A stretch of 64,000 bases of DNA from Perna viridis. Its lineage: Eukaryota. The notes under the pieces were generated by a model. The model ran no database searches and had not been told where the DNA came from. It worked only from the letters and a program-made list of their open reading frames with translations. The first letter of the stretch is position 1; each line of letters begins with the position of its first letter. Location of the stretch: the NCBI GenBank assembly GCA_037379345.1, contig CM074517.1:5642001-5706000 (forward strand), written 5' to 3'. Positions 22,191 through 53,567 of the stretch are shown here, piece after piece. Both the position numbers and the translations under genes were made by a program.

Positions 22191-22875
22191 AGTAATCAAG
22201 GGAATCAAGGTTATAGCGGTAATCAAAGAGTAATCAAGGGAATCAAGGTTATACCGGTAATCAAAGAGTAATCAAGGGAACCAAGGTTATAGCGGTAATC
22301 AAAGAGTAATCAAGGGAACCAAGGTTATAGCGGTAATCAAAAGAATGTAATCCAGGGACAAAGACCAGACATGGAATACAGACATACACAACAAAAAACA
22401 TGAAGTAACTAAAACCATACATACAAAGTAACAAAAGCAAATGAGCAACCCGGACTCCACTAAAAACTGGGAGCATGAATCAGGTGCACCGGTAGGGTAA
22501 GCGTCCTCTGCTTTTCTAGAAACAACCGCCCGAGTTGCTAATAAAAAGTCAAGTCCGGGGTAGACGAAAGAAGAAAGGAAAACTATGACACGTTGAACAA
22601 ATCGGTTTTCATGGCGCAGATGGATACACTGTAGCTATCCACGAGTTCATGATGACAATCATAAAACTTATGTAGTGATGACTTCAATCTTCTAGCAACA
22701 TAACCTAGTTCCACGAGCCTATTTGTTAGAATTCTAGCGCGATACAAAAAGTCTGCGTAGTTTCGGCACGCTCTGGCATAACGTATTAGCTGTGATTTGA
22801 ACACTCCATACGCAGGTGCTGAAGGGATGTTGTCACAGATGAAAGGAAAGTTGACAATTTTGAATGAAAAGTCAT
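22191..22875 (-). mobile_element. PLE family A (Naiad-type): RT C-terminus, 3' UTR and 4x 38-bp terminal repeat
   Basis: 22873-22583 translates as DFSFKIVNFPFICDNIPSAPAYGVFKSQLIRYARAC...DLFNVS*, a PLE RT thumb. The ORF stops with no C-terminal GIY-YIG, as expected for N-terminal-endonuclease (Naiad) PLEs. Confidence 0.9.
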
Positions 22876-25800
22876 TTATTGTTTTATGTCTTCAGAATTG
22901 AAATTAGGGTGAAAGTAACGGGGACTACAGTGATTGAGATCTGCTAATTAATTAATGTAGATATTATGAATGTGAAAAGTCCTTTTTCGTGTTTAACCTT
23001 GTTTGCTTTTTATTATTATCATAGTTTGTTTATTTTTCATTATTCAACATTTTTTTTCACTTGCCAAACATTCCCTTTAAGAATCATAGTTGTAATTAGT
23101 TAGCATGGTTATTTTTTCTTCCTAATGGTCTTTAAATTTATTGACTGAACACTGTTCAAATACAATATAGTTGTTCTTCATGTCCTGCCAAAATAATTTT
23201 AAAATTATCAATCTTTCTTATTTTCTTATTATCAATTATTGTGGCAACATATAGGTATTTAATATAAAGAAAATTATTAAATAGATGAAATAAAGCAAAT
23301 TAAATATACATACCCAAATTATTTATACCATTGGTTCGATCATCGCTTCATGTAGTAACCAACAACCTGGAAAACAAGCAATGATGAAGCATAAAGTTGA
23401 AATATTTATAAAGATGTAATTGGCAGTTACTGTAGTAAAAACCCAGCCCGATGATAGGTGGTAAACCCTGGTGTTATTCTGGTGCAAGGTGCAGAAACTA
23501 TTGCTTGTCTTAATTGTCAGAAATCAAATACATGTAAGTTGCCCGATACATGATAAATCTCCAAGTTATCCTGTTCTAAGTTGTAGGAACTTCCGTTAGT
23601 TTAAACAGTCAGAGAAGTCTACGTGAACGCCATTATTTATTCACGGGTACATGTAACTGAGAGATAACTGCGAAAATAGTTAAATGATGTTCGTGCAAGT
23701 GAGTAATGGATATAATATTTATTGTTTTTTGTTGGTTTTTCTCGTTTGTTTTTACTCATTTCTAATCTTTTTTTTAATTTTCTTGTTGCCTGTTTATGAC
23801 CCATACATGACTAGACAAATAGGTAATGTTCTGTATTTCAAGTAGGCAATTTTCAAAACGTCAGAAAACTTACTGGATTTATTGATTGAATCATCACGAC
23901 TGTTACGCTTCATGATGATTTAGAGCAGTTTTGAATTTCACCCTCTTCTCTACTGTATAAATTCAATATATAAAAATTCTACTATCGTCCAGTATTTTGC
24001 AACTCGTTTACCACTAGCAGGAATTAGTGAAAATTGAAAAATAATATTACAACATTTTAACTGAGTAGAATAGTCAACGTCCAGTTCTAGATGGGTTACA
24101 AAATTTTAAGTGGTTTACAATGAATAATACAATACCATAAAAGTGTTGAACAGAAAGAAAATTTATCTTTATCGTAAACACTGCAGACAATCCAATTATG
24201 TAATAACTCATTGAAAATGGTTTATGTTGACAAGTGAAAGGCTGCAATCAATGACAGATGGACTATATTACTGGATTTATTATATTAGTAAAGGTGCAAA
24301 ACAAATGAAAGCTATGCAAATTATTGATGCTAAAACTAAAGTTATCTTAAACATTAAAATTGAACTTTGATGTGATTAACACTTTAGTTATGTTTAATAC
24401 TCTATAATCAAACAAATACTAGGAAGAAATAATCATGAGTAAGGTGAAGAAACATTAATTTTGTTCAAATTGTGCATTTTGTTTTCTCGACTAGCGATCG
24501 ATCGTCTTTAAAAATAATGCACTTCATTTTCAAATAGAGTTTGCACACAAATCAAACATAAATCAACTCCAGTAAGGTTCTTACACAAAAAATCATTTGC
24601 ATAAAACATTTAAATACAGTCATGTTATTTTACAAAGTATTTCATCTGAATGGTGCACGGCTTTCGCTTATCGTGTAGCAATAAATGCTACACGTTACAA
24701 TCACTGTAAGATACAACTCGTGTTTAAAGAGCAATAATGAAATCGCACCAAAAGTTTAGATAATAAGGAAATAGACCTAATCAAACAACTGTAGATTACT
24801 ATGGGAACTTCGTGTCAATCTTTAACCCTCTATATATTTTTCAATTCATTTTGTAAAAGGAAAAGAAATTGGATTCCGTCTCAATCTTAAAAATAATCAC
24901 CGTGTCGATTTCTCTTGAAAATGTAATATGCAACTTCCGGAAAGTTATAGCCTCGTTATGAGATATTTAATGGTGACGTTGATAAACAACAATGATAAAT
25001 CAAATTTGGATTGATTTTGCTTTTAAAACAATACCGCTGGTCTTAAAGATGTTTAGCTTTCAATATCTTCATTTTTCCATTAACGTCTTGTGAATTCTGC
25101 TTTATCAAATTTGTCTGATCTCGGTAAATTTGACGTTGTACATTAAAAGCAATTTTGCCATCATAATGGACATAGTGGTATAAATGAAGACAAACAGCTT
25201 CAGGGTTAAATTTTTAGATGTCAAGCAAGGAAATACGACGTACAGTATTGAGTATTATTGAGTACATTAGTTATATTTTGCTTATTCGGTTTTAGACATT
25301 TACTACAAAACTACAATAAATAATTTGATGTAAAGTGATTTTTATTGCGTAAGACGCATGCCAAATAGTTGAGTGGCGTCTGCATATATGCCATTTTCAT
25401 CGCTTGTAAATTTACACTTATGCCACTCAAGACTTGTCGCTTGTAAAGTGGGACTTAATATGCACTATCAATGTTTAAAATTACTACTGACTTGTATTTG
25501 AGTATTACTCGACAGTAAAAGATATTGTAATGGAAGACTTTTCCCATCCTTTTAATATTTTGTTTTGTCAAGGTTGAACAGGAATGAAAACAAAACAGGA
25601 TATATTAACGAAATTTATTGAAGAAAGTGAAGTATATGTACACACATTTGATGACCAGTAAAATATAACGTTTTCAGCACGCGTCCTATTCATTAAGCTT
25701 TGCTAGTTTCTTTATAGTTCTTGCTAGGTCCAATTATATTTCTCATTTTAATGTAGCCAGTATTTTACAAACAAATTTGGTGACAGTTGTAATATTGTAA

Positions 25801-28704: not shown

Positions 28705-28946
28705 GAGTAATCAAGGGAACCAAGGTTATAGCGGTAATCAAAAGAATGTAATCCAGGGACAAAGACCAGACATGGAAAACAGACATACACAACAAAGAAC
28801 ATAAAGTGATTAAAATCATACATACAAATAACAAAAGCAAATGAGCAACTCGGACTCCACTAAAAACTGGGAGCATGGACCAGGTGCACCGGTAGGGTAA
28901 GCGTCCTCTGCTTTTCTAGAAACACTCGCCGAGTTGCTCATAAAAA
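28705..28946 (-). mobile_element. PLE family A 3' end, well preserved
   Basis: Nearly identical to 22305-22547. Confidence 0.92.
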
Positions 28947-35241: not shown

Positions 35242-38200
35242 GCTAAAATATAACTAGACCGATAACACGTCTGGTGATACGTCACCTTCGCATGCATATC
35301 AATACTAAGCAAATTAAAAAAAACAACAACTATTGTGCAGGTATTAACTGTTTTGAAATTTTAGGTGATTGAAAAAAAAATTGCAAATGGCAGAAAAAAA
35401 ACTAAAACTCGTGTATTTTTTAACCTTTAAGGCTGCTATACAAAACAAAATAAAAGTTAGTACCCCTTCACTGTGAAACGTATACTTTCAATCAATTTGT
35501 ATATGTCGGCGAATAAATCAGTATCAATGGAAAAAAAAACTACCAAATGTGTATGAATATTATCGCTTTAAGTTGGCATAAAATGTCTTGTTTAGTAATT
35601 TGAAAGGTCTTAAAGGTGATTTGAGACTTTTAATTCTATTAGCGACACTTTTAGTCAGTAAACATGCTGTTCAATGAGAGAAATGTGTCAAATTATAGTC
35701 AAAGATAAACAATTGTAAGCAATATAAGAATTTACACTTATCATTCGAATCTTCCTGTGTTTTAATACAACAAATAGTATGATCACTTTTTTCTATCTTT
35801 TTTCATATTTAGGTAGTAAGTGTATTTCTTTCATACTATGTTACAGTGGTTAAAATATCTAATGCAAAAACCAAATCTTGTACATTATACTCGCTCATCT
35901 GTCTAAAAAAAAAAAAGAACCTACGGGACTGTTTGTTTAGTGAACGCCTTTTCTTCACAACATTCTATAAACGTTTATTTTTCGCGAGTAGTGAATGTTT
36001 GCCAATTTCGTAAAAACTCGCAAAACTGAATAAAAAAGATCTCATTGTTACAGAAATCAAAACATCTTTAAAGGAATGCCAGACTCGAAAATATATGGCA
36101 GCAACTCTGCATTGTTATCCTTCATCGCAGAAAATAAATTGCTTAACAGTATATAAAAAAGTACAACAGATCATACGGAATAAGTTGATTTTGAACATGA
36201 ACGTTTTGTTTCACAGACCTTTCGTTATATAGTAGAAATAAAATTAATATCTTGTACAACATAAATTCAAATTATGTGACTCAGACTGATTAACCATTCT
36301 GATCAAGATCCTGAAAACTCAACACTTTTGAGAGTGTAAGACATGGAAATCATATACTCCTTAAGGAACGATTTGACATTTTCTAAATAAGACCAAGTTG
36401 TTATAAATGACGCAAAATGTAGTACACATACAATACAATATTATATTTATGCTCTATCCACCATTTTAACAGTAATTTCATCCCGTACATCGACTTCCGA
36501 AGTTAACTATTTCGATTTCGAGATTTCACAATTCGATGTTATGCAATATGAAGGAATATTTGGGTAAAACTTGGGAGTAGGAGTAAGAAAACAATGCAAG
36601 AAAGGGAAATGTGGCACTCGCCCAATTTAAAAAAAGATAATTATTAGGACATATATAAGTAAATATAATGGTTTGGGTTCGTTTCCAACAGTTTTCAAAA
36701 TTAATTTATAATTTAATATACATGGGTCAGTTTCAATTATTAATATGACACAGGAGGCAGTCAAGAGGATATAACTGGTAAAACAATATTTGCAATGTCA
36801 TTTTGTCTTAAATTAAACATAGCTCTTAAACTTATGGTGTCATAAAAGTGCCATATGTATTAACTTTTTAAAAAACTGCTATATTCTGATCACAATTTAC
36901 AAGGCTAAATGTATAAACCATTTATGGAAGTGTGAACTCATCAACTTAAAAGTTTATCCAAGGACAACATAGCACGATATTAAAGCTACTGAAATCAGCT
37001 ATACATAAAACTTAAATATATTATAAAAATCCAAAACCGGTAGGTAGATCAATTTCTATCGAATATTGCCTAACAAAGTAACTATAACTGTACGTATGCA
37101 TTTTACTGAATAATGTTTGGTCCATGGGTTATACCGAACTGTCCATATGCGTCAGACCTTATGCCCAATTCATCAATATTTTTATTAAATTATATGCATG
37201 TCAATTCATGTTATCTTAACCCAGGAATAATCTTTCAGAATATTAAACTGATTGATGAATAAAACTTGACACAAATGAATTGCTGCGCTAAGACAAACTT
37301 AATTGTCAAAGTTACCATCTTACATAATGTACGTTTTTTCTATGAGCTGGTTTAATTGAATCTGAAGTATTTCCAAGCGAACTATTTTCTCGTTAGTTAA
37401 ATAGGCAATGAGGCACTTCTTCAAAGGGGGCCTTCTTCATACTTAATGATCATTTTGCAGTATTGAAGTTCCTCTACTGTAAAATTTTTCTCTACGATTC
37501 TCTTTTAATACATTATCAATTATGTGCAAATTGTTGCAATTAAAGGCTTTGTTCCAAAGAATATTATCCGTATTAAAACTATTGACATATATACTTTTTG
37601 CAAGAATTAGAAAGAACATTGTATAATATCATGCATTTATTCGTAAACTTCCTTGTATTGAAATAAAATCTGTGTTGTTGAATTACAATTATTATACATT
37701 ATGGGATACTTGCTACATACAAAACCACACCAGGAAGAACAAACTAGATATCTACAGTTAAACCGAGTATAAAAATTGATGGTTTGGAATACAAAAGTAA
37801 TGTAAAATATGTGTTGGTTAACATGGGTTCAAAATGTTATGGAAAATAAGATTATTTTCGGTGTTTTTTGGGAGAAAATTCATGTGATTTAAAATCACAA
37901 TAACTAAAACTGCTATTTCGATGTTGGATGTTATCAAACGCACAGTGATTTGAATAGCATTATCAACTAAAGTTGCAAAGAAAACATTAATAAAAAATAC
38001 AATAACTTAGTTTACATTTTGACATTCAATTAAATGTGCCAGTTTCTCTAATAATTAGTTGTGAATAAAAAAGTAATAATACATTTGTCAAGTACTAATA
38101 CTGCATTCATGAACTGTAATTAAAACAGTGCATCAACAGCCTCATATATTCTTTCTGAAACGAGCATAATTATACGTACATTTGAAATTATGCGTCCATG

Positions 38201-41091
38201 ATTTGTGCTAAAATGGAAATGTCTTATGATTGGAGAGGCCAACTTTACTTCTGATTTGGTCATAGGACAACCGACTTATTATCTCATTAAAAGTAACTAA
38301 TCTGATGGTGGTTTCATTCCGATAGTTTTCTTCTAGTATAGAAAAAAATATTTGCAATTATTGTTATTGTTTATAATATATTTTATCTTTATTTTACTAT
38401 TACGAAGAAAATATCTATTAAGTCATTTTTGTCACTATAAATTTCTCAAGCAGTGATGCAAACAGCAGTCTCAGGCTTTATACTAGAATTACCTTATATT
38501 GTTTGCTAAAGTGTTGATTGGTGGTTCACAAAGCAGTACTTACTCCGGAACATTTGATTTATGATCTATTAAGGATAGCGATTTCAGCCAAATATTTCTC
38601 TCAGGGGAACAATTACAGAGGCTATTTTTACCCTAATCAACTTTAACATTTGAGATGCAATATAAATTGAGCAAACAAAAGCATAAAACTCAAATATATG
38701 TGTCAAGCGCTTTAAACATTGGAGTCAATTTAGTCACTTTGTTATGTCGTAAAATGGAGTAAAATATTTAATTTTATACTCAGAGGAAAAACAGTAATCG
38801 GACTATCACGTGATTGAAACACTTGTTACCTTTTATATGGGGAAAATTGTTTAACCGTAATCGGCATTCCGTTTTATCTTCCTCCTGATTGCCTCTGTTC
38901 ATTGCATAATAGGAAGTGCGGCGTCACATGCAATCTTACTTAAAGACTATATAAACTATTTCTGTTAACTTTGGAAAGTTTTTTTTTTCAAATGTCTGGG
39001 ATTTCCGTAGAAAATCATTGCCAATAACTTCTTTATTTGAAGACGTCTTTTATGGATGGACTATAATAGTAATTATTAAGGAAATAAAAATGTAAGAATA
39101 TTAACTAGCATATGAAGAAGAAGGGACATAATTAATAAACCTTAGTAAACCTTATTCATTACTTTCGACACATTTACCAATTCCTGTTGGAAACACATGA
39201 TAAGAAAATCAAAATTTAATCGCAAAACGAGATTCTATAGTTTATTCAGTAGTGCAATATTATTGCAAAATGAGCAGAAATGAAACAAAAAACTAAATGT
39301 GGTTGCTACACAAAGCTACATGGCCTACAAAAAATCATTTTGATCGATGAACATTATTAAATAGATTTTTAAAACTGATTTTTTTTTTAATTTTAAAAGC
39401 AAAGACAGGTCAGTGCTTTTCCAATGAGTGCATTTGTTCCAATTTTTAACACATTGTTTACCTTAAAAGGAGGCTAGATTGGCTTTGGACAAAATCAACC
39501 TCGGAAATTTAACATTAGTAGTTTTGTATATTTACGTTACCACAGACTGGTAATTGTAAAATTTATGGGAAATTTTGATGTCACAATGCTACTTGATATT
39601 GTCACATCATGAGATACGATTAACTGTACTCTTACGAGATTTTTGTGAAATTGGCGCAAAAAGACGAAAACATGTTGTACACATAATACTCAATCTTTTT
39701 TCCGTCAATATTTCGCATTAGTTGGTTAAAGAACTACAACTCCCATTTCTGCAATATTAACACCAACATTTTAGTCCTTGACTACAAAGTATCATATGTA
39801 ATTATCACTATTGTTATCATGCAAAGGAGACATAGCAAACAACAAGGTACAAAAAATAAATTATTCAAAAAAAAAAACCAAAAAAACTTGCAAACAGGTA
39901 CATGTTTCTTTTTGCACGTACATAAAGCAATATACGTTGCTTATATAATTTTTCTATGGAGTGGTAATCTATCAATCAATCGTAGGATATACATTATTGG
40001 TTTAAACTATCTGAACTTGAGTAACTGAAAGACAAAAACTGTTCAGTCATTCACACATAAAAGACAAAAAAAAACTTTCCAATGAATTACTCGATTGCTG
40101 TCACGCGAACTATATGTTTTTAAACAATCTTTGAAATTGATCAGCGTTTTACTCTCTGATCCTTTCCAATAAAATGAATTAAATATAAATTGAAATCAGA
40201 CTTGGTCCATTTCCCACACAATATAATATCAGTCATGATGCTGAAGAAGGTTTTGATTAATGTGTTTTGTCATTAGGTTAAGTGTAACTGACGGCATGGA
40301 AAATTTTCTTGGTGATGTAAGAGACTTTATATCGATTGGTCATCAGCACTGACGTGTCTGTGACAAATTAAGATGTGCTAATGTGCTATTTGTGTACTTT
40401 TGCGGTTTCGCAAGAAATAGTGTATATTGACAAAATCAACTTTTGTCAACTTATGTAGCATTTTTACTTAAACGCAAAACCCTGGGAAAAAGAAATATGA
40501 AAAAAGAACGAATAAGGCGAAACGAAACATGCACCAGCGTATAAAATAAATCCAAAATAGTAAATTCTTTCGGAAAGGATTAAAACACACTTTTAAGTAG
40601 GCTCTGAAAGGCCTGATAACAAAAGTAATAAATTACACGATAAAAAGACAACTATTCTTCAAAATCAAATCAAAAAGTAATATAGCGACAAATTAATGAA
40701 CAACATCTCCTGAATGAGGAACTCTGTATAGACAAAATAAGATATCAACTCATAAGATGCCCGTAGCTACAGAAAATTAGTTCAGGACATATTGAAGAAT
40801 GACAATACCATCAAAGCTAAGAGCATTAGAAATAATTGTCCACTACAACTCCAGTGGACTAAATTTGGAGTAGTAATGTCATGTACTAAATAAGAAGTAT
40901 TTGATGCAGCGCAATATTAAAAAAGACTTAGGGATGCAGTTCAGGGTCAAATATCTCTATTTGTAATATAAATCTAAAGAGGGCAGTTGATAAATAAGGG
41001 TAACCAAAAAAATCACCAAACACTAATCCGATTCATAACCAAATCCAAAATAAATCTTGCAAAATAGATATTACACACCGGAGCAGCCGGT

Positions 41092-41187
41092 ACCACAATG
41101 ATCATGATTTGACACAGGCATTTTAAACGAAATGGTTGGTTAAATCTAGGTTTTACAGCGCGCTAAACCTCCGTCTTCAATTGTGGT
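41092..41187 (-). ncRNA. Degenerate P5-permuted twister-ribozyme-like motif in the 3' UTR of PLE family C
   Basis: Sense strand: ACCACAAT...GA GGTT...TAA CCA ACC ATTT-cgttta-AAAT GCCTG TGTC AAAT CATG A...ATTGTGGT. Perfect 8-bp closing stem; core order matches twister; P2, L4 and P4 carry mismatches. Confidence 0.5.
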
Positions 41188-41279
41188 GTGAATAACCTGT
41201 GGTGATAAAGTAGCATTTTCATGCTATTGCGTCATAATCAGCAAATCAGCGGTCACACCAGCACAAAGAATAATTTACA

Positions 41280-42925
41280 AAATACAATCATTACGCATTA
41301 TTTTAGAAAAAACTGAGCATTCCTCAGCCAAGGATTGATATCTAAACAGAATTTGATAAGACCTTTTGAGATTCATTTCCTCATGCCCCTGATTCAGATG
41401 TATGTCACGCAGATATTTATGGTATTCAAGGAACCAGAGTAGTTAGTACTTGCTCTAGCGTAGCGAATCCATTGTGAAAAATAAACACAATAGACAGGAC
41501 ATGAAGGTATATTGCTGCACAGGTAAGGACAATTTATGATATTAAATTTAAAGTCGTCTTTTTTTTATCAAAAATCTTACTCCTGAGATGTCCACTATTG
41601 CCACATTCGAGATGTAGGTTCAAAAAGATGCAGAACAAGGTGTTTCTGTAAACGCCTGTTTCTTGAGCTCTGGTTGATATATTGAAGGTAACCATTTACC
41701 AAAAAAAAGGGTTTTGTTGATGGACAATAAATCTGTTTGTAAAGTTAAATGTTTTAGCATCTTGTTTTTAATTTTTATTCTCTACGATATTTTGAAGAAA
41801 CTCAGTCTCGTATGAATACAAATCGGCTAGGAGAGGAGCGTAGTTAGTACTCATTTGAATTGCAAACTTGTTGTTGAAAAATAGCTCCTCCAAACGTGGC
41901 AAATATGTTATCAATGAGGAAATCAATCATTTAGCCAACCTGATTTTCCATGTAGCACACTATGCCCTTCTGCAATGTTTTAGAAAAATATGTGGATTTG
42001 TAACCAAGAACAATATAATTTTTCGAAACTGCAAAAGATTTACGAATAAGTCCTATCAAACGAGACTTCAGTTTATCATGTGGCAACGTAGTGTAAGATT
42101 TGAGAAGTCAAAAGTATGGACGGAACCAATTTCTGAAAAGCTGCCGGATTTTAAATTTTGAAGTAATTTTTTGGAATTTTTAAGTAGCCAAATATGATTA
42201 CAACCACTACGAGAGTAGGTGGTATTACAACTAGCTTGCTTTTCACCCTTCACTGCAGACAATATCTTTGCAAGGTAAATTAACATGAAAATCCAGCTAT
42301 ATACTTTTCTTTCTATGGAGTTTTATAAAGTTTGGGAATCCAATACAAGTTAGATAATTCCTCACATTGTTTTGAAGTTGATAGAAGACATGAAAGACTT
42401 GTTGTTGTTAAGAATTTCATCTTTGTCAAAAGTTGTGCGTTTGTATGTGGCATTGTGGGATTTAACTACCAATGCCCAATTCCTTTATAAAGCATTTGAG
42501 GTAATGAGCTTTACAAACAAATACAATGTTGTTTGAAGGTTTTTCCGCAAGAACTATATTATATTTCTCTTGTAGTGAGAAAAGCATCCAAGTGCCTCAC
42601 GATCATTGACACGAACTTGGGTCTTTTACTGACATATTTCTTGAGATTGTCAATACGATTCCGTACCAAAGATGGTACGTATCCATCTGACAATGACTTG
42701 TCCTTTGTCCTTTTCTCTCTTTATCCATGATGTGACATAATTTCAACAGCAGTCATTATGGTTTGGAAATTTATTTTCCAATTGAGGCGCCGTGGTTCCC
42801 TGAATTGTGGACTATGAGAAACGACCTTTACATAGGAGTTCATTTTAACTGATATTCATATCACCAGTGATGACATGACCAGAAGGACTGTAATTCAACA
42901 GTGATGAAGCATAGTTACATAAGTA
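41280..42925 (-). pseudogene. Decayed Naiad-type Penelope-like reverse transcriptase ORF (family C)
   Basis: Manual translation across frameshifts gives CNYASS..YSPSGHVITGD (42919-42860), PQFREPRRLNW, IVLAEKPSNNIVFVCK, LYWIPKL (42345-42328), TFDFSNL/YTTLPH (motif A, 42115), FLIDNIF..FGG..FQQ, IQMSTNYAPLLADL (motif B, 41860), FNFTNR/DLLSIN, KIFDKK/DDFKFNIINCPYLCSNIPSCPVYCVYFSQWIRYARAS. Confidence 0.92.
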
Positions 42926-42949
42926 TTCTATGCATCGGATTTTAATTGA

Positions 42950-43165
42950 AAATATGTGCTTTGTATATTGCCGTGAGACCGTATAAAACGGTAAAAAACT
43001 TCAATGTTTTAAAAAGTGTGTGATATCGAAACCTTTGTGGAAAAGCTTTGCTAAGAGGAATCTTTTACGTTCAATAAAATCTGACACTTTCCTACAAATA
43101 CGAGCAAAATGAACCAGTTTTGAAATGTTAATACCAAAGTATCACACAGTTTAGTATGTAGACTG
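42950..43165 (-). mobile_element. RT thumb fragment of another PLE family (D)
   Basis: Translates as LHTKLCD/FGINISKLVHFARICRKVSDFIERKRFLLAKLFHKGF/RYHTLFKT, homologous to but distinct from the family A and C thumbs. Confidence 0.78.
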
Positions 43166-44472
43166 TATTGAGCTTTTATGACAGGTACTCTAATGCCTTT
43201 TACGATATACTTCACCTATAATACAGATCTCTTTTAGAGAAAAAGATGTCGACCTATAACGGGCTCTTGAATAAAAGGGGTGACCTTCCTAGTTGAGTTG
43301 ACTGTTTATTGACTGTTGACTATTGATTTAGAAACTAAATCCACAATTTCTAACAATGCATCTGTTTCATAAGAAATAACCAGATGATATGGGATGCATG
43401 AAGCATGATATTATTTCTCAAAAGAATCAATAACATGATAAAAGATGCTGTACGATCGCAAATACAACACAATAAATATAAGCACTTGGGCTACATTCTA
43501 TATCATTATCCTCAATAGATTCTAGAAGAGATAGCAAAGGACTAAAGTACATCATTAAAATAACCCTTCAAATACCAGGACATACGACTTATGATATAAA
43601 GTACAAAAGTTCAAATCAGGGAACTAGTGTGTAACATCACTTTTTTATCGATATTGCTTAATGTACTGACACTTTTAATATACAGAAAATAAAATTACAA
43701 TTTTTACTTTTTGAAAAAAAGAAAAGTTTTTTTTTTTTTTTTGTTTTTTTGTTTTTTTTTTTTTGTTTTTTAATACCAAAATTTATTAATAATTCCTGCA
43801 ATTAGGGGTTCCCTGTTTTTACAACTCTCATATCCAGGAAATGTATGAGAGTTACTCCCGTTTCTTAATTTGTATACCATTATCCTATACTTTTTAAAAA
43901 TACTATTTCACTCATGTCAACCAAACGTTCTATAAATTATATGAACTGTTAGAGAATCATATATAAACAAATTAATCCAAGGACCGTAGAGTATCAATAA
44001 TTGACCGTTATCTGAGGCACACAGACTTAAATTTCATGCATCACTGAATTTGACAGTGTAGATTGGAGCACGTGCCTGATACTTTTAAAAGTGTGTGGAT
44101 ATATTATTTCAAATTATGTAAGTAAATTCTATAATGATGAAGACTTAACTTATACAAAGGTATCAAACAGATGCACAATAACATGCCTAACCTGAAGAAA
44201 CCATTGAAAACAACATATACATGTAGGGAGTATTGATAACCTCTGGTAAGCTACAATAAATGCTACCCGTTCTTATACACGTGTAAAAACTTTACAAATT
44301 GCATGATATATGTCATCGCCTAGTTCGTAATTGACGATATCTGAGAAAAAAATCATATATTATACCAGAGTCCGAACTGTGGAAGAAAAGTAAAAAGTAT
44401 TGTTTACACTTTAAATACTAACTGTGCAAGATATATGTATATTAAGTCAAGGAGAAAAAAATAAATACTGGT

Positions 44473-45745
44473 CAATACCAAACAACCAAGGCAACAGATA
44501 CCATAAAGTCGCAAACAGCATGAAGGGTAATAACAATACCAAACAACCAAGGCAACTGACACCATGGAGAAGAAAACAGCATAAAGGGTAATAACAATAT
44601 CAAACAACAAAGGCAACAGATACCATAAAGACGCAAACAACATGAAGGGTAATAAAAATACCTAACAACCAAGGCAACAGTTACCATGGAGAAGAAAACA
44701 GTATGAATGATAATAACAATACCAAACAACCAAGGCAACAGATACCATAAAGATGCAAACAGCATGAAGGGTAATAACAATACCAAATAACCAAGGCAAC
44801 AGATACCATAAAGACGCAAACAGCATAAAGGGTAATAACAATACCAAACAACCAAGGCAACAGATACCATAAAGTCGCAAACAGCATGAAGGGTAATAAC
44901 AATACCAAACAACCAAGGCAACTGACACCATGGAGAAGAAAACAGCATAAAGGGTAATAAAAATACCAAACAACAAAGGCAACAGATACCATAAAGACGC
45001 AAACAACATGAAGGGTAATAACAATACCTAACAACCAAGGCAACAGTTACCATGGAGAAGAAAACAGTATGAATGATAATAACAATACCAAACAACCAAG
45101 GCAACAGATACCATAAAGATGCAAACAGCATGAAGGGTAATACCAATACCAAATAACCAAGGCAACAGATACCATAAAGACGCAAACAGCATGAAGGTTA
45201 ATAACAATACCAAACAACCAAGGCAACAAATACCATGGAGAAGGAAACAGCATGAAGGGTAATAACAATACCAAACAACCAAGGCAACGGATACCATGAA
45301 GACGCAAACATCATGAAGGGTAATAACAATACAAAACAACCAAGGCAACAGATACCATAAAGACGCAAACAGCATGAAGGGGAATAACAATACGAAACAC
45401 CCAAGGCAACAGATACCATAAAGACGCAAACAGCATGAAGGTTAATAACAATAATTAACAACCAAGGCAACAGATACCATGGAGAAAGAAACAGCATGAA
45501 GGGTAATAACAATACCAAACAACCAAGGCAACAGATACCATGAAGACGCAAACAGCATGAAGGGTAATAACGATACCTAACAACCAAGGCAACAGATACC
45601 ATGAACAAGGAAACAGTATAAAGGGTAATAGAAATACCTAACGACCAAGGCAACATAAACAATGGAAACATTGTGAAGGGTAATAACAATACGTAACAAC
45701 CAAGGCAACAGATACCATGCAGACAGAAACAGCATGAAGGGTAAT
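44473..45745. repeat. 61-bp minisatellite (AATACCAAACAACCAAGGCAACAGATACCATAAAGACGCAAACAGCATGAAGGGTAATAAC), ~21 copies
   Basis: Exact 61-bp spacing (44474, 44535, ...). Confidence 0.97.
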
Positions 45746-46139
45746 GACAAAATTACCGAACTGATTAAGGCAATATATTCAAATGGAATGTACGTAAAAA
45801 AAAATGGCACTATCATGATACAAACCGTAATGTTGGAAACAACCGCAATACTCCATGTGAGACCGAATATTTTTAAGGACCGCAACATACGTGTAACAGG
45901 AAACTAGAAAACCTGCCATTAAAAGTTTGATATTACTTAAAAGAGCAGTTTTCGTTCTGTTTTTGTTTATATATAATATAATATTTATATATAATATTGA
46001 CTTGTTGTGACATGTATCCTACATAACAGCACCTAGATGAGCTGTACCGTACTATTACGTCGTGTACCACTTTACAGCCCTAGATTAATCCTACGAGGAG
46101 GAATGATCCGCCCAGCGAAAGCTATATTTTATATAGCCT

Positions 46140-46260
46140 AGCTGGCCGAGTGATCTAGGGCGCTGTACATTGTGCAGGTGGCGGTGCCATAGAAGTCACA
46201 GCGTTACGAGTTCGAGTCCTGCGGAGTGAACAACCAAACTTCGCAAATTTGACAGTTCTT
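46140..46260 (+). mobile_element. tRNA-derived SINE head
   Basis: A-box-like TGGCCGAGTGA (46143) and B-box-like GAGTTCGAGTCC (46208); no clean cloverleaf, so not called a tRNA. Confidence 0.6.
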
Positions 46261-46933
46261 GCATCGTTTTTCAGACCCTTCTACATTACCTTCCCTTTAT
46301 TAAATTGATCCGGTGGAGCAGTATATCGAAGTGAGTTGTCACATTCAGAGACGTTTGTATAATAATGATTTTTTGTGACATGTATCGTTAATTTTATCAT
46401 CTATCCTCCATAAAAACACCTAGATGAGCTACCATACATAGTGTACTAAGTTACAATCCTTGATTAACCCTACGGGGATGAAAAACTTGGCCAGAGAAAG
46501 CAATATTTTTATATACCCTATCTTAAATACAGGATTTAGTTATATGTAACGCTTTAAGTTTGCAATTTATTCTCTTGCATTTCTACATGTATCCTATAAA
46601 GCTAATACAACGTAATTTTCGCGTATTGGCTATTTTAAATGATTGTGAATTTTCCCGTTTTACAGTACACCCATTTTGTTGGTTACAACATACACAATAT
46701 TACAATTAGTATTTATACGATGTATGGCAGGTGATGCTGTTTTAAGTAAACTCTTTAATCTCTTTTACACTGAAATATTTTGTCCAGATAAAAAGTAGAA
46801 TACACATATACCTTTTTTAATTTATTGGTTAATGATGTAACAAAATCCGTAGAAAGTATTAAATAATATCTTTTATCTAAAATAAATCGTCATATGTCTT
46901 ACTATGTGTACTATAAACAACCCTATCAAAGAT

Positions 46934-47127
46934 TAATCAAGGGAACCAAGGTTATAGCGGTAATCAAAAGAATGTAATCCAGGGGCAAAGACCAGACATG
47001 GAAAACAGACATACACAACAAAGAAAATAAAGTAACTATAATCATACATACAAAGTAACAAAAGCAAATGAGCAACTCGGACTCCACTTAAAACTGGGAG
47101 CATGGACCTGGTGCACCGGTAGGGTAA
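46934..47127 (-). mobile_element. PLE family A 3' end
   Basis: Nearly identical to 28708-28900. Confidence 0.92.
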
Positions 47128-48510
47128 AAAAAATAAAGTTACTTTTAGTGGTTATTATGACTTTCTTTTTGGTTGCTCATTATTGTTTTATATTTGTACA
47201 TATTAAAAATATGGGTCGTATAAGGTTTCGATCGCAGTGTAACATTTTCCCAAAGTTTGTAAAAGAAAGTTTTTTCACCTCTTTCTTAAAATGATTATTC
47301 TAGAAAATTCAGTTAATCATCGAAAGTTTTTGTTTAATCAATTTTGTAGAGAATGAAAGAGACGAAACCAATTTGGGACGATTTAATATTTAAAGTGTGT
47401 GTTTAAACCGTTTCTTTCCCTGATATTGTACCCGATAAAGACCGATATTTACGGTCCAATTTAAGTTCTTTATATAGACATTTTGAGGGTTATTGAGTCA
47501 ACCAATATGGTAAATGTGTTTGCAATGTTATGAAACATTGACTATTATGATTTGCATGTATTTATAATGCATTATTACGGTTATTATTATGATATAAATG
47601 TGGAATGAGAAAACAACAATGAAACAGGTCTTTTGAAATAACATTATCCTTATTTTACTGTTTATTAACATCTAAAAAGGATGTCCACGTTTGATACATC
47701 ATATGAGCAAAACTATAAATGAGCAACTCCTACTATAGTTGGATAGCTGGGTTACTATAAATCCCTATCATTTGGATAGCGAGTTACAAACGTCACACAC
47801 GTCATAGGCGTATTTTATTGCATGTACACGTCATAGAGTCTTGTTAATGTATATTTCGTGTATGCATATTCATTGTGTATGTTTAAATCATGTTTATTTA
47901 CTCCATATTTGCATGATATTATTTCATCTCAAATATTGGTATATAATCGTAACAGTAAGACTTATTATTGTCCCCTTTCTTGTTACAGTTAATCTTCTCA
48001 AATGGTATAAAGATAAAAGAACCATAATAAAGTGATGACTTTAATTGACTGTATGAAATGAACCCTACCTGTAAATTTCGATAATTCACATGTATAATTT
48101 ATTTTGTACTTTTACTCTCGGTCTTTCTACTGTTACAACGTCACTGCACTTTTCCTTTGTAAAATTGCTTTACGTCACCGGTGCTTTGGAAAATTTATTT
48201 GAAAATAACACTTTATTATTGAGGACATCTATATAATAAACAGAATAATCATTCCATTATCATGAATAACAAAAATTCAGTTATGCCGAGAACAAAACAA
48301 GTACTGCACATCCACAAATGCTTTGTCTTCTTGAATTGTGATGATATTTTAGTTTCTCCATCCCATTAATTATGCTATAAATAATTGACTCATTTGATAA
48401 TTGAAAACTTTCCTTCATGTTTATTGATGTTTAACCTTTTCCTCTATTCATCCTCTATCTGATGTCTCGATTTTTTCTTTAAATTTAGTTTCAATATTCA
48501 TTTTCATCAT

Positions 48511-48664
48511 TTTTGTGCTGCGCTAAACTTCTTACAATTAGGCTTCTGGAACAGGGTTATGTTGCTACAAAATTGAAGGTATCATTACAGAAGTTTTATT
48601 GTCGTCATTATGAATCCCTGGATCGTTACAGTGTATCCCTCTACACCATGAGAACCGATTTTTT
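48511..48664 (+). mobile_element. PLE family A RT C-terminal fragment
   Basis: Translates as LCCAKLLTIRLLEQGYVATKLKVSLQKFYCRH..., matching the 22583-22804 ORF. Confidence 0.85.
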
Positions 48665-49408
48665 TCTTTAATTTTAGTTTCAATATTCATTTTCATTACC
48701 CGATTTTTAAACATTAGTTGTACTATCCTATCCCCAAAGACATCAAACTTGCACGAATAAATTTTGGAAAACCCGATTCATTATATAATACATGTAGTAG
48801 CCCAAGTGCTAGGTTTTATTTTAATTTTAGTATTATTCATCAACAGGTTTTGAATATATTATTGATAATATTTTACCAAATAAAGTAACCGTCGACATGG
48901 AATTACTAATATTCTTTGATAGGGTTCAATATACTCAATGAAATTACTCAACGCATGTCTTTGAAGTCCTTTATTGTATGCACATTTTTCAGGTTTACTT
49001 TAATTTCATGCTTAAATAACTAAGTTAATAAAAGGTCGGAGTAATTATTAGGTAATAGAGGTAGAAAAAATATCAACTATTTAGTATGTTCATACTAGAG
49101 TACTTATAATGTTAATTTTTATTACTTTTGATGATGTGTGATGACAGGATTCAAATAAACGAAACACCTTTACAAGACAATTTTAAAAAATACATGAAAA
49201 ACAAACAAAAAGAAGGAGTCAAATGCACTATGATAGCTGTTAATAAATATGATAGCTCTTGATAGTATTTCGTAGCAATAAAAATACATTACTGATCTTT
49301 TCAAACGTGTCGCAAAAGAACGCAACTAAATACTTCCTACATACATGGGTATAAAATTTAAATTGTAATATTTTAATTCCTGACGATTTGGTTTTTTACA
49401 ATTTATTT

Positions 49409-49592
49409 CATGCCAGAGCTTGCTGTAACTACGCGTGCTTTTTGTATTGTGCTAGACTTCTTACAATTTGGATTCTTGAACAAGATTATGTTGCTAAAAA
49501 ATTGAAGTCATCACAACAGAAGTTTTATTGTCGTCCTCATGAACTCGTGGATCATTATGGAATATCCATCTGCACCATGAGAGTCGATTTTT
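49409..49592 (+). mobile_element. PLE family A RT C-terminal fragment
   Basis: ORF 49388-49606: HARACCNYACFLYCARLLTIWILEQDYVAKKLKSSQQKFYCRPHELVDHYGISICTMR. Confidence 0.87.
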
Positions 49593-50844
49593 TTCTTCAA
49601 ACTTAGTTTCAATATTCATTTCATTACTCGTTTTTTTTTAAAACATTAGTTGTAATATCCTATCCCCAGAGATATTAAACTTGCACGAATAAATTTTGGA
49701 AAACCCGATCCACTATATAATACATGTAGTAGCCCAAGTGCTAGGTTTTATTTTAATTTTAGTATTATTTATCAACAGGTTTTGAATATATTATTGATAA
49801 TATTTTACCAAATAAAGTAACCGTCGACATGGAATTACTAATATTCTTTGATAGGGTTCAATATACTCAATAAAATTACTCAACGCATGTCTTTGAAGTC
49901 CTTTATTGTATGCACATTTTTCAGGTTTACTTTAATTTCATGCTTAAATAACTAAGTTAATAAAAGGTCGGAGTAATTATTAGGTAATAGAGGTAGAAAA
50001 AATATCAACTATTTAGTATGTTCATACTAGAGTACTTATAATGTTAATTTTTATTATTTTTGATGGTGTGTGATGCCAGGATTCAAATAAATGAAATATG
50101 TTTTTAAAACAATTTAAAAAAATTAATAAAGAGAGTCAACTGTACTATAATAGCTGTTTATAGTATTGCGTCGCAGGTAGTGTTTTAGTGTTTGTTTCTA
50201 TGAAATTCGAGTGTAGTAAGTTTTGTTTTTATTTTTTATTCTTTATATCGTTGTTATTTATGGCGGCGGATTATGTCAGTTGTTCTTAAAGCCTTTTAAC
50301 TATGGTTGGCATTTTACAGTCAACAAAATATATAACCAAAGATTTGTTGACTTGCGAGGTATACTTAACTTCTCATTTATGGATTAGATAATATGCTTTT
50401 AGTTTCGTGTGTTTTTATTGTTCGCCAACACAATTTAAGAATTTGCAGGTTCTGTGTGAACGTTCAGTTGAAATACGATATTTTGATATTGAATTAATTT
50501 TATTTATTCAAAAGACTTGATGTCGTAGTGTTTCTTAAAGAATGGGGATGCTTTCATCTCCCAAACTTATCTTTCAAGGCCAACATATTTGTCAAGTGGA
50601 GTATTATAGTTGATACCTTTAATGATATGGAAAATGGTCGTTAAAATTGTCATAATTTTTTAATGCAGGAAATGAAGAAAAAAAGAAGAAATTTTATTAT
50701 CCGTATGAATGGGCCCGTAAGGTTCACGTATGTGAAATGTCGAAATAACAGCTTTGACATTAGAAATAAAAAATCCATTTTAACTTTTTTTCGTGACAGT
50801 TAAAACTGTTCCAATATGGGTTTAAATGACTATATTACATTATA

Positions 50845-51160
50845 ATGTGAATGGAAATAGTGAATATGCCAAAGAGACAACAACCTCACCGGGATGGAAA
50901 ATGTCTGCTAAAGTCACCCATGGGTCTTCAATGTCCTCAAACGACAGGGCAGGCTGCAGTTGGCCCCAAAACAACATTCTACACAGGTACAGCGAAATAG
51001 TTGCCCTATATACGTACTCCAGCTACAGAAAAGTAAACCGAAATGAAAACGAAACAATACATATTGTGACCAGAAATTCCTGGCTTGGAGCAGGCACAAA
51101 ATGAATGCGGCGGTGTTAAAGTATTTTGGCGAGATTAGAACCCCCTACCGTCCCTTAACA
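50845..51160 (-). mobile_element. PLE family B 3' end
   Basis: Homologous to 31212-31475; contains the best-preserved twister-like core. Confidence 0.72.
51078..51149 (-). ncRNA. Twister-ribozyme-like motif (permuted)
   Basis: Sense strand: GGTA GG GGGT...TT TAA CACC GCC GCA-ttcattt-TGT G CCTG CTCC AAGC CAGG A. Compare the rice twister core UAA CACU GCC aau G CCGG UCCC AAGC CCGG A ... AGUG GA GGGG. Confidence 0.65.
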
Positions 51161-53103
51161 TGTTTATATTGTGTGAATTGTACAATTTCTCCGTTACCAA
51201 ATTACACAACATAAGATACACAATTTCCCTGTACTACGTATACACTGCATACAGAGTTTTAAGTGTTATAATGTCTTTTCTATATTTGCCTTTGTGTCCT
51301 AATTTCAAGATTTTTTTTGCAGCGCGATTTTTTTTCAGTTAGTAATAAACTCAACAAATGTGACACGTATTTTTCAAAGCTCAAGGGTGTGAATGACGTC
51401 CTCTTTTGTTATTTAAAGAAAATTAGTGAACAAATAGTAAAATAAAGACATTGCTAATGATTAGTTTACAATCATATTACAAAATCTTCAAATTACAAGA
51501 CACGTCCTTAATTTACTCATTTTTTTAATATGTTAATCTAATATGTAACTTATTTTTAAAAGACATATAATACTTATTGTACAAAATCTGTAAACATGAA
51601 GATCATTTGATAACAGAAAGGCAAGTAATTAGGCCGCAAGCAAATTGACCATCAATAAGTTGACTGGAATGTACGAAGTACAAAGTGATTGAAATAAACA
51701 ATAAATCCTAAGTTTGACTTCCAGCAAATTATTAAAATGTGGAGACAAAATGAAACAAAGAATTAGTTAGCTGCAATATCTGGTGAAAACATATCACTGT
51801 AATTTCCCGTCATTTTTATGACTTCCCCAATTGAAATTATGTGGCGCAGCAAATGGAAAAAAATCAAAGTATTGTTACAAGTAAATTGATAATACTCATG
51901 AAATCTTTGCTTATATTGATGTTGTTATTTTTTATTCTGTGATAAAATATAAAAGCCTCCCAATGACAAATACAGGGTTTTAACACTGAGAAAACGTATC
52001 GTTGATTGATCATAACTCGCAAGTCCCACACAAAGCGTAATTTTCAATTAAAACAGTGTTGCAGAAGGAAAACGTATTTACAGTAGCCACGCAAATTTCT
52101 ACTATAAAATTATTTTGACATTGACCTTGATATTGAAGCATGTTATTCTAATAAAGTCAAATTACTTGATGTCTAAAAGGTTATACAACTTGTCTATGCA
52201 ACAAGATCTGATACTTTAAAAGGACGACCATGTAGGCCACAAAAAAGTATTATTAAGTAAGTATTGAAGTCACCAAAAATATATTAGCTAATGATAACTT
52301 TATTAGACGTGACCAAAACTTCACATTTCAGGTTTGTCAAGTGACCTTACCTTATGATACTGCTATCAAAAAATGCATATCAGTCAGGACTACAAACATC
52401 TGTTTTAAAAGATGGGAGTATAGTTGCCATGGAGACATAAAAATAGTATAAAACTGTGTTCAAATAAAGCAATGAGAAGGTACAATGGTTTAAATCCATA
52501 CACCTCGATGTTTAACAAATAAGACTAAATCATATAATTCATTGGAGTAGCCTCTTTACAATGGCCATTCGGACTATACTTACACGAGGAATGTATGTAT
52601 AAATACGTATCAATCAACAGATGAAATTTCATCTTGTTACAAAGTGGTATTAAGTCACAAGGTATTTGTATAAATAAAATTGTTTCATTTGATGTCTAAA
52701 CTATTTATCGAATTGAAAAGAGATGATATTGACTGGAAGGTTGAACTTGAGTTCAGTGGAGTGTTTACATTAATACGACCTCAAAGTAACTCGTGTCAAG
52801 ATCAGAGCAATTCATTACTAGATCTTAAAGTATAAGTCTATGTCAATGTGTAGGGTATTGGGGTCACAACATATTTTGTAATATGGATAAAGTTACCATT
52901 TTTAATTGAATGGTACTTCTAAAACCTAGGGCTGTAATAGTAATTCGTCTTGTGCATTTAAGCTTCCTATCATTTGAAGAAATAATGCATCACTGACCTG
53001 TTTAAATGTGTCACAACAGAACTAAATACTTCCTACATACATGGGTACTAAATTTAGATTATAATATTCTGATTCTTGACGATTTGGTTTTGTACAATTC
53101 ATT

Positions 53104-53567
53104 TTATGCTAGATCTTGCCGTAACTACGCAGACATTTTGTATTGTGCTACAAATGTAGACATCTTACAGTTAGGTTTTTTGAACAGGGTAATGTTGCTA
53201 CAAGATTGAAGATATCATTACAGAATGAATTCTAATTTCGTCATCATGAACTCATGTATCTTATTGTGTATCAAACTGCCCCATGAGAACCGATTTGTTT
53301 GCCGTGTCATATTTTTTGCTTTCCTCTTTCGTAAACTTAATGTGGGTGTTTCTAGAAAACCAGAGGACGCTTATCCTACCGGTGCATCTGGTCCTTGCTC
53401 CCTGTTTTAAGTGGAGTCCGGGTTGCTCATTTACTTTGCTTCTTTGTACATGTTATTTTGGTTATTTAACGTTCTATGTTGTGTGTGTCTGTTTTCCCTG
53501 TCTAGGCTTTATCCTTGGAATCTGAACTTTTAATTTCCGCTCGAATGTTAGTCCTCTTGATTACTCT
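53104..53567 (+). mobile_element. PLE family A, RT C-terminus plus 3' UTR, diverged
   Basis: YARSCRNYADILYCA... followed by TCTAGAAAACCAGAGGACGCTTATCCTACCGGTGCA...CTTGATTACTCT. Confidence 0.88.

Follow-up and report, generated by a model that had tools for sequence, protein, structure and literature searches.

Does the stem-closed RNA motif that follows a decayed Naiad reverse transcriptase (RT) in Perna viridis belong to the retroelement, and is it a self-cleaving ribozyme of the twister class? This question arises at positions 41187-41092 of the window, the stretch of 64,000 nucleotides that was analyzed (GenBank assembly GCA_037379345.1, contig CM074517.1, positions 5,642,001 to 5,706,000). 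Among retroelements, Penelope-like elements stand closest to telomerase; to our knowledge, hammerhead ribozymes occur in nearly all of them. Naiads lack canonical hammerhead ribozyme motifs (Craig et al. 2021, PMC8557442), and the Naiad/Chlamys branch, without canonical hammerhead motifs, has yet reached tens of thousands of copies (PMC8557442).

The window copy and its family

On the minus strand, positions 41187-41092 form a 96-nt domain closed by a stem, P5, in which ACCACAAU (41187-41180) pairs perfectly with AUUGUGGU (41099-41092). The original prediction had placed a perfect 8-bp stem about 100 nt past the decayed RT on the same strand. The stem was confirmed and the gap is 88 nt, because the last RT ORF fragment (41376-41275, minus strand; C-terminus, assigned from the ORF list and C-terminal homology in sister copies) stops at 41275, its stop codon being at 41277-41275. 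Between this stop codon and the domain lies a 6-bp hairpin with a GNRA tetraloop, UAGCAU-GAAA-AUGCUA (41226-41211), which is conserved in family C, the family of this copy, with GCAA as the majority loop. Downstream of P5, a tail of about 100 nt (41091-40990) leads to the 3' end of the element, which is common to all aligned copies.

Inside the stem, the minus strand reads GAAGACGGAGGUUU, AGCGCGCU and AAACCUAGAUUU|AA (U at 41142, A at 41141), then CCA-AC and the part that holds P3 and P4, namely the hairpin CAUUUC-GUUU-AAAAUG, CCUG-UGUCAAAU-CAUG and a final A. These parts were assigned by alignment to the family and to the twister consensus. The 3' strand of P2 is CGG at 41173-41171 (GGG in the family majority) and is followed by A and GGU (41170-41167), the 3' strand of L1 and partner of pseudoknot T1, where the canonical sequence is GAGGG. 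Palindrome 1, AGCGCGCU (41164-41157), stands in place of the 3' strand of P1, as cross-lineage comparison also indicates. A tract resembling palindrome 2, AAACCUAGAUUU (41153-41142), has a CUAG core and ends at the nucleotide 5' of the predicted cut. The scissile bond is predicted at U41142|A41141, in the UAA of L1, by alignment to the twister consensus only. It is followed by the 5' strand of P2, CCA at 41139-41137 (CCC in the majority), and by AC at 41136-41135, the partner of pseudoknot T2 (canonical GC). The P3 hairpin (41134-41119) keeps the conserved C-G closing pair and has one C.A mismatch. P4 and L4 occupy 41118-41103, where the majority has CCUG-UACCAAGU-CAGG. Outside P5, CACCAC-UGGUA (41204-41193, minus strand) can pair with UACCAG...GUGGUG (41092-41074). 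This outer pairing would extend P5 by two helices around an 8-nt bulge, and it is kept in the family C majority and in an environmental relative, L109.

The copy is mutated, as had been claimed for several core positions: it differs from the family C majority at 12 of 98 positions, in P2, P3, P4 and L4. The competing pairing AGGUUU/AAACCU that had been pointed out also exists, and the window copy adopts it in its fold of minimum energy. The window copy is certainly dead as a ribozyme, and the chance that it cleaves is close to nil. Positions 41187-41092 represent an inactive, mutated copy of an RNA domain of about 100 nt that is integral to the Naiad 3' UTR. Just upstream of the decayed element, the minus strand at 44404-45888 contains overlapping long ORFs in which a hydrophobic unit, LWYLLPWLFGIVITLHAV, recurs; the region has the appearance of a minisatellite or tandem repeat rather than of a gene.

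Stems of 8 bp with loops shorter than 100 nt are common (we estimate about 100 per 64 kb), and therefore it is the family and not the stem that exceeds chance. Searches of the 723-Mb assembly gave 2278 family C candidates with a 221-nt query and 3567 with a near-majority copy as the query. Thirty copies were aligned. Each is 83-86% identical to the window copy, and they have variable start points and one common 3' end (at about 40990 in the window). Majority sequences were taken as column majorities over the non-coding 100-270 nt only. The family C majority (n=30) consists of P5 CCGCAAUGG, AAGA, GGG, A-GGU, 24 nt plus U-1, |AA, CCC, AC, C-AUUUC-GUUU-GAAAU-G, CCUG-UACCAAGU-CAGG, A and P5 CCAUUGCGG. 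Every helix and both pseudoknots are restored in it: P2 is GGG/CCC, P3 is a perfect 6-bp helix and P4 is CCUG/CAGG, while the loop UACCAAGU supplies T1 (ACC:GGU) and T2 (GU:AC), which pair in 88-93% within the family. The original prediction had foreseen exactly this P4 and this loop, pairing with GGU and AC, for the family consensus. Of the cells in the family C alignment (A1), 90.5% form pairs under the proposed structure, compared with 24-40% when the partners are slid.

Within family C, no covariation beyond that of shuffled alignments was detected, as expected for neutrally decaying copies. Changes of G4-C95 to A-U in P5 were considered as compensation and rejected, as they represent CpG decay at the expected rate. 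The register of P2 is ambiguous in this family: GGGAGGU opposite CCC gives 3 bp without an unpaired G, or 2 bp with the catalytic G. A short UUAG/CUAG helix, if formed, leaves three extra nucleotides before U|AA.

Relation to twister ribozymes

The canonical twister has the order P1, UAA, 4-bp P2, GC, C[P3]G, CCGG-UCCCAAGC-CCGG, GUAAA, P2', GAGGG and P1', and its P1 is not essential (PMC8501958). We took the consensus from an Infernal alignment at an unrelated locus and from Table 1 of PMC8501958. The order of the parts in family C is the type-P5 permutation of the twister, and its two deviations are compensated (ACC with GGU, GU with AC). Type P5 itself is already known, as are twister variants at the 5' ends of RTE/Perere-3 elements (PMC8501958). 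The Naiad domain shares with type P5 (Rfam RF02684, clan CL00120; Roth et al. 2014) the order of elements, UAA, P2, a P3 closed by C-G, P5, the 4-bp P4, the 8-nt loop U[C/A]CCAAG[U/C], the two pseudoknots and (G)AGG(G/U). It differs from type P5 in that two palindromes replace the P1 hairpin, P2 is shorter in family C, T1 and T2 contain A-U pairs, the A-rich strand is not GUAAA and the Rfam scores lie below threshold.

A second family in the window is nearer to the canonical core. The same arrangement at 51078-51149 had been attributed to a different family, and this turned out to be a second Naiad family, B, whose copy occupies 51149-50840 on the minus strand (diverging upstream of about 51143) and which has at least 1362 candidates in the genome. 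The family B majority is a near-canonical type-P5 twister: P5 GGCCAGA/UCUGGCC, UUUAAAA, GGGG(G)AGGG, U|AA, CCCC, GC, C-GCA-U5-UGC-G and CCUG-UCCCAAGU-CAGG, with T1 as CCC:GGG and T2 as GU:GC. A diverged RT lies upstream of some family B copies. The twister P4/L4 feature (U-CCC-AA-GC) is present in the family C and family B majorities and mutated in the window copy, and T1 and T2 are present in both families, with compensatory changes across lineages.

We then have the 18-mer over P4 and L4, which occurs 855 times in the genome, while its reversed control does not occur. At least 120 metagenome contigs contain it. Many of these carry canonical type-P1 twisters (AUAAA-UUGG-GAGGG), some are GC-rich and bacterial-looking, and about 15 are type P5, like the Perna viridis copies. 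In three of the environmental contigs (L097, L109, L123), the type-P5 motif is preceded on its own strand by a Naiad-like RT (38-61% identity, E 1e-140 to 1e-167); these contigs contain intact natural versions of the domain at L109:262-385, L097:726-849 and L123:336-459. L109 is a relative of family C in which 27 of 27 modelled pairs are intact. In L097 and L123, CCCC/GGGG is followed by GAGGG. U|AA, a 4-bp P2 and GAGGG with the catalytic G are found together in L097, in L123 and probably in family B, and these three match the twister consensus (UAA or CAA, CCCC/GGGG, GAGGG, GC or AC, UCCCAAGU) except in the A-rich linker. This strand, canonically GUAAA, is UUAAA(A) in family B, AAGA in family C, UAUA in L097 and AUUA in L123. 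As a separate observation, dozens of contigs among L081-L157 (e.g., L086, L088 and L113; contigs Ga0056xxx, Ga01263xx and Ga0209xxx) carry near-identical canonical type-P1 twisters with the exact P4-L4 18-mer, followed by a conserved GGCAGGAAGGGCAUCC tract. These probably mark where a retroelement of the sampled animal host has its 5' ends.

In a cross-lineage alignment of 15 sequences, 89% of cells pair, compared with 30-45% when the partners are slid, and 22 cells are changed on both sides where 11.5 are expected, a value reached in 0 of 500 shuffles. The third pair of T1 is C-G in five sequences and A-U in six. The T2 pair is U.G in eight and U-A in seven, compared with C-G in the canonical consensus. 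In the three clades, P5 and P3 are helical throughout, with sequences that are unrelated from clade to clade. P4 is invariant in this alignment because it served as the search sequence.

Rfam models do not detect the domain at their thresholds. No match was found in the window at gathering score, at 38000-53000 with E<=10, or in a family B copy (L057), and no twister match was found at 20 family C loci (E<=10). A search of the genome with RF02684 returned one unrelated 22-bit site only. When the near-majority family C copy L007 was searched in a 146-nt space, twister-P1 was the best of 4227 Rfam families, over P3, P4 and L4; this was a local match only, of 12.7 bits compared with a gathering score of 67.2. 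Separately, L031:1516-1572 (plus strand), near G000:C3:2746868-2746916, contains a type-P1 twister-like sequence, CCGG-UCCCAAGC-CCGG ... GGAG-GAGGG, which scores 32.1 bits against Rfam twister-P1 (E 1.4e-5, 171-nt search), also below the gathering score of 67.2, and resembles the variants at the 5' ends of RTE-type elements.

We also used a strict type-P5 descriptor that combines the L4 core, the 4-bp P4, a P3 closed by C...G, T2, UAA, P2, A and T1. Random sequence (30 Mb, with the dinucleotide content of the window) yielded 2862, 76, 3, 0 and 0 matches at successive levels. In about 0.6 Mb of real sequence, searched on both strands, only three family C copies matched. By extrapolation, fewer than 0.1 full matches per genome would arise by chance. 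A hammerhead was rejected, as there was no Rfam match and no CUGAUGA...GAAA core by eye on either strand. A SECIS element, which some Naiads carry, was rejected by eye because the AUGA/GA kink-turn pattern is missing.

The domain is a real, twister-derived part of Naiad elements; we hold its derivation from a twister to be very probable. Judged from its sequence, it most likely works like a twister as well as descending from one, with scores below those that Rfam requires of members. Catalysis by the twister-derived domain appears likely, and for the intact versions we would put self-cleavage at somewhat better than an even bet.

Palindromes in place of P1

A conventional P1 is absent from the domain, with at most 3-4 weak pairs at the cut site. 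The 22-24 nt at its expected place consist of two self-complementary tracts, whose sequences differ by lineage and stay palindromic. The layout is the same in every lineage: GA-GG(G/U), U, palindrome 1, 1-3 nt, and palindrome 2, which ends at the nucleotide 5' of the predicted cut. Palindrome 1 is GUGAUCAC in family B, UGAGAUCUCA in L097, UGGGAUCCCA in L123, AGCGCGCU in family C, GGCGCGCC in L109 and UGGGCCCA in L148, with double changes in four of its five pairs. Palindrome 2 is AAAGUACUUU in family B, AAACAUGUUU in L097, AACUAGUU in L123, AAACUAGUUU in L092, AAUC-U-GAUU in L095 and AAAAU-U-AUUUU in L142; in family C it has a CUAG core flanked by AAA/UUU, with two C.A mismatches.

The central four bases of palindrome 1 are self-complementary, and therefore an intermolecular duplex explains them and a hairpin does not. 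The two tracts are not complementary to each other, so that P1 cannot form, and from this we infer pairing of two domains. By analogy, this suggests that the palindromes that replace P1 serve dimerisation. The replacement itself is a new feature that the original prediction did not contain. A preference for the dimer of 8-15 kcal/mol in RNAcofold was discarded as evidence, since any hairpin-rich RNA shows it by strand swapping.

A domain of comparable shape was observed in the 3' UTR of another Naiad family, Y/A (window 28841-28941 and 22545-22450, both minus strand, and L044:5298-5402). It has a 13-bp closing stem, 77 enclosed nucleotides, the palindromes UUUCUAGAAA and GGUGCACC, and a pairing of GAGGA with a UCC...loop. 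It shares with the family C domain the place after the stop codon, the long closing stem, a near-equal enclosed length and the two palindromes, and it differs in having no UAA / UCCCAAGY / GAGGG core. Model R1 aligned only its outer stem. Either its fold is a different one, or the domain is a descendant that has changed greatly.

Our best explanation, to which we assign a probability of about 0.6, is that the 3' UTR of this old, high-copy Naiad ancestrally contained a circularly permuted type-P5 twister, which paired through its palindromes and cut at U|AA. In this structure, P5 would enclose the A-rich linker, the 3' strand of P2, (G)A-GGU, the 24-nt segment, U|AA, the 5' strand of P2, AC, P3, and P4 with UACCAAGU, whose ACC and GU would form the two twister pseudoknots with GGU and AC. 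Two domains would pair through the palindromes, either on two RNAs or in the tandem units that are typical of Penelope-like elements. The paired form would cut at U|AA, which would trim tandem or read-through transcripts to unit length; a role of this kind has been proposed for the dimeric hammerheads that other Penelope-like elements carry in their pseudo-LTRs. The narrower statement that Naiads carry a 3' UTR or pseudo-LTR twister whose P1 is replaced by two palindromic strands and which is active only as a dimer is more tentative, and we place it somewhat below even odds.

Several findings bear against activity. No Rfam twister model reaches threshold, P1 is missing, the A-rich strand is variable, P2 of family C is short, and AGGUUU/AAACCU can mask the T1 strand. 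Every genomic copy retains about 150 nt on the 3' side of the predicted site, so that the templates must still have been uncut at this point when they were copied. Logan contigs (assembled contigs only, of runs whose RNA nature is a guess) extend over the domain and across the predicted cut site. A 543-nt Logan contig that occurs in two runs starts 5 nt before the predicted cut; we did not count it as evidence of cleavage. It is possible, then, that the domain is a twister descendant that no longer cuts and has been kept as a folded, dimerising module of the 3' UTR, used for the start of target-primed reverse transcription by the RT or for pairing of RNAs. The retained sequence 3' of the cut, the missing P1, the varying A-rich strand and the failure of the Rfam models fit such a module, as does the family Y/A domain, which in the same place encloses 77 nt compared with 76 and has two palindromes without a twister core. 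We nevertheless consider it unlikely, although it is the most serious alternative. Several lineages retain positions that matter for nothing but catalysis, namely UAA and, in B-like copies, GAGGG with its guanine. Compensatory changes have preserved the pseudoknots, and copies of the hammerheads of other Penelope-like elements also span both sides of their cut site, yet these cleave.

The reading as a paired, cutting twister has two parallels among retroelement-borne ribozymes. The T-variants at the 5' end of Perere-3/RTE in Schistosoma mansoni are also retrotransposon-borne twisters with a weak or dispensable P1 and a proposed role in processing of the element RNA (PMC8501958). They are type-P1 ribozymes at the 5' end of a LINE-like element, and their P1 strand comes from the target site (PMC8501958), whereas the Naiad domain is a type-P5 form with palindromes, located in the 3' UTR of a Penelope-like element. 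The minimal type-I hammerheads of Penelope-like pseudo-LTRs (Cervera & de la Pena 2014; Lunse, Weinberg & Breaker 2017) share the host class and the position in the 3' part or pseudo-LTR. There, a reduced self-complementary stem lies beside the cut site and two units must pair; according to Lunse et al. (2017), these hammerheads cleave as dimers. The Naiad domain belongs to a different ribozyme class. The palindromes in place of P1 mirror the dimeric hammerheads, and dimerisation would therefore be a shared and testable feature of mechanism, which perhaps amounts to a sensing of tandem or paired RNAs.

Our literature search found no paper linking a twister with Penelope-like or Naiad elements. 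If the proposed reading is true, this would be the first dimer-dependent twister, and Penelope-like elements, in molluscs and in other samples, would have recruited a pairing-dependent self-cleaving RNA a second, independent time. A twister in the region where other Penelope-like elements have hammerheads would imply that the Penelope-like class requires self-cleaving RNA in general and that the structural class of this RNA is interchangeable. It would also widen the known sequence space of twisters to A-U pairs in T1 and T2, a missing P1 and a variable A-rich strand, and current Rfam models would be missing thousands of genomic copies.

Linkage to the Naiad reverse transcriptase

The motif had been tied to the RT from one decayed copy, and the wider comparison bears this out. 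The RT C-terminus lies just upstream of the domain in 18 of the 30 family C copies, and the gap from ORF end to domain is 80-98 nt where the ORF end is kept. When loci were found by a 140-aa RT fragment alone, all 12 carried the domain, with 55-110 bits against model R1. A 727-aa open frame (L044:3076-5256) from a related Naiad family served as the query for tblastn, which aligned its residues 60-674 to window 43138-41427 on the minus strand, where the decayed, 5'-truncated RT remnant also appears as RT-like ORF fragments. The related family and family C are 55-57% identical over the C-terminal 140 aa of the RT. In the family C copies examined, the ORFs are all broken.

The RT had been called a Naiad RT, and the diagnostic motifs agree. 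Naiads are characterized by an N-terminal GIY-YIG with a Zn-finger-like motif, CxC, GxKF/Y, a change of DKG to DKA and a C-terminal RT (Craig et al. 2021, PMC8557442). The intact related frame contains DCSC (CxC), GPKYREP (GxKY), ADKA (DKA) and FRYIDD. Upstream frames of the related family (L047) contain a CxxC finger, a GIY-YIG core (LIYGLEC...LIYIGE) and the catalytic E/N block. The RT fragments of family C are homologous to the related family, for example in a decayed NNIVFVCK block, and no EN part is seen in family C itself because the copies are truncated. Pfam gave nothing useful on the decayed ORF pieces or on the intact related ORF, and therefore the Naiad identity rests on the diagnostic motifs. 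More than 35,000 RT candidates were found in the genome, and the aligned family C copies have variable 5' ends and a fixed 3' end.

Most of the family B copies examined have no RT upstream. This would fit an independent element, short and non-autonomous, or a host ribozyme gene whose position behind the RT in the window copy is incidental. We consider this very improbable: copies without RT result from variable 5' truncation, the distance between ORF end and domain stays within 80-98 nt, the domain was present at every locus found by RT alone, one continuous block of homology runs from the RT to the common 3' end, and the same order is found in three environmental contigs. A chance twister resemblance of an ordinary hairpin-rich UTR, which the lack of a significant Rfam match and the commonness of 8-bp stems might suggest, is already disfavoured and the least probable of all, as the descriptor has no match in 30 Mb of random sequence and the same architecture, with compensatory changes, occurs in at least three lineages and in other samples.

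Known traits of Naiads include high copy number, 5' truncation, partial tandems and a 'tail' of 30-40 bp (PMC8557442). The 64-kb window contains four further C-terminal fragments of Naiad RT, at 22586-22876 (minus strand) and at 48498-48665, 49409-49594 and 53128-53256 (plus strand). At L004:1780-1823, 44 nt are repeated after the normal 3' end as a 'tail', starting a few bases past the 3' strand of the twister P5. Two 3' parts lie in tandem, 324 nt apart, at G000:C3:25339476-25340046. At G000:C3:46030786-46078905, at least 14 Naiad units follow one another head to tail with a period of 3410 bp, and every unit contains broken ORFs of 255 and 269 aa.
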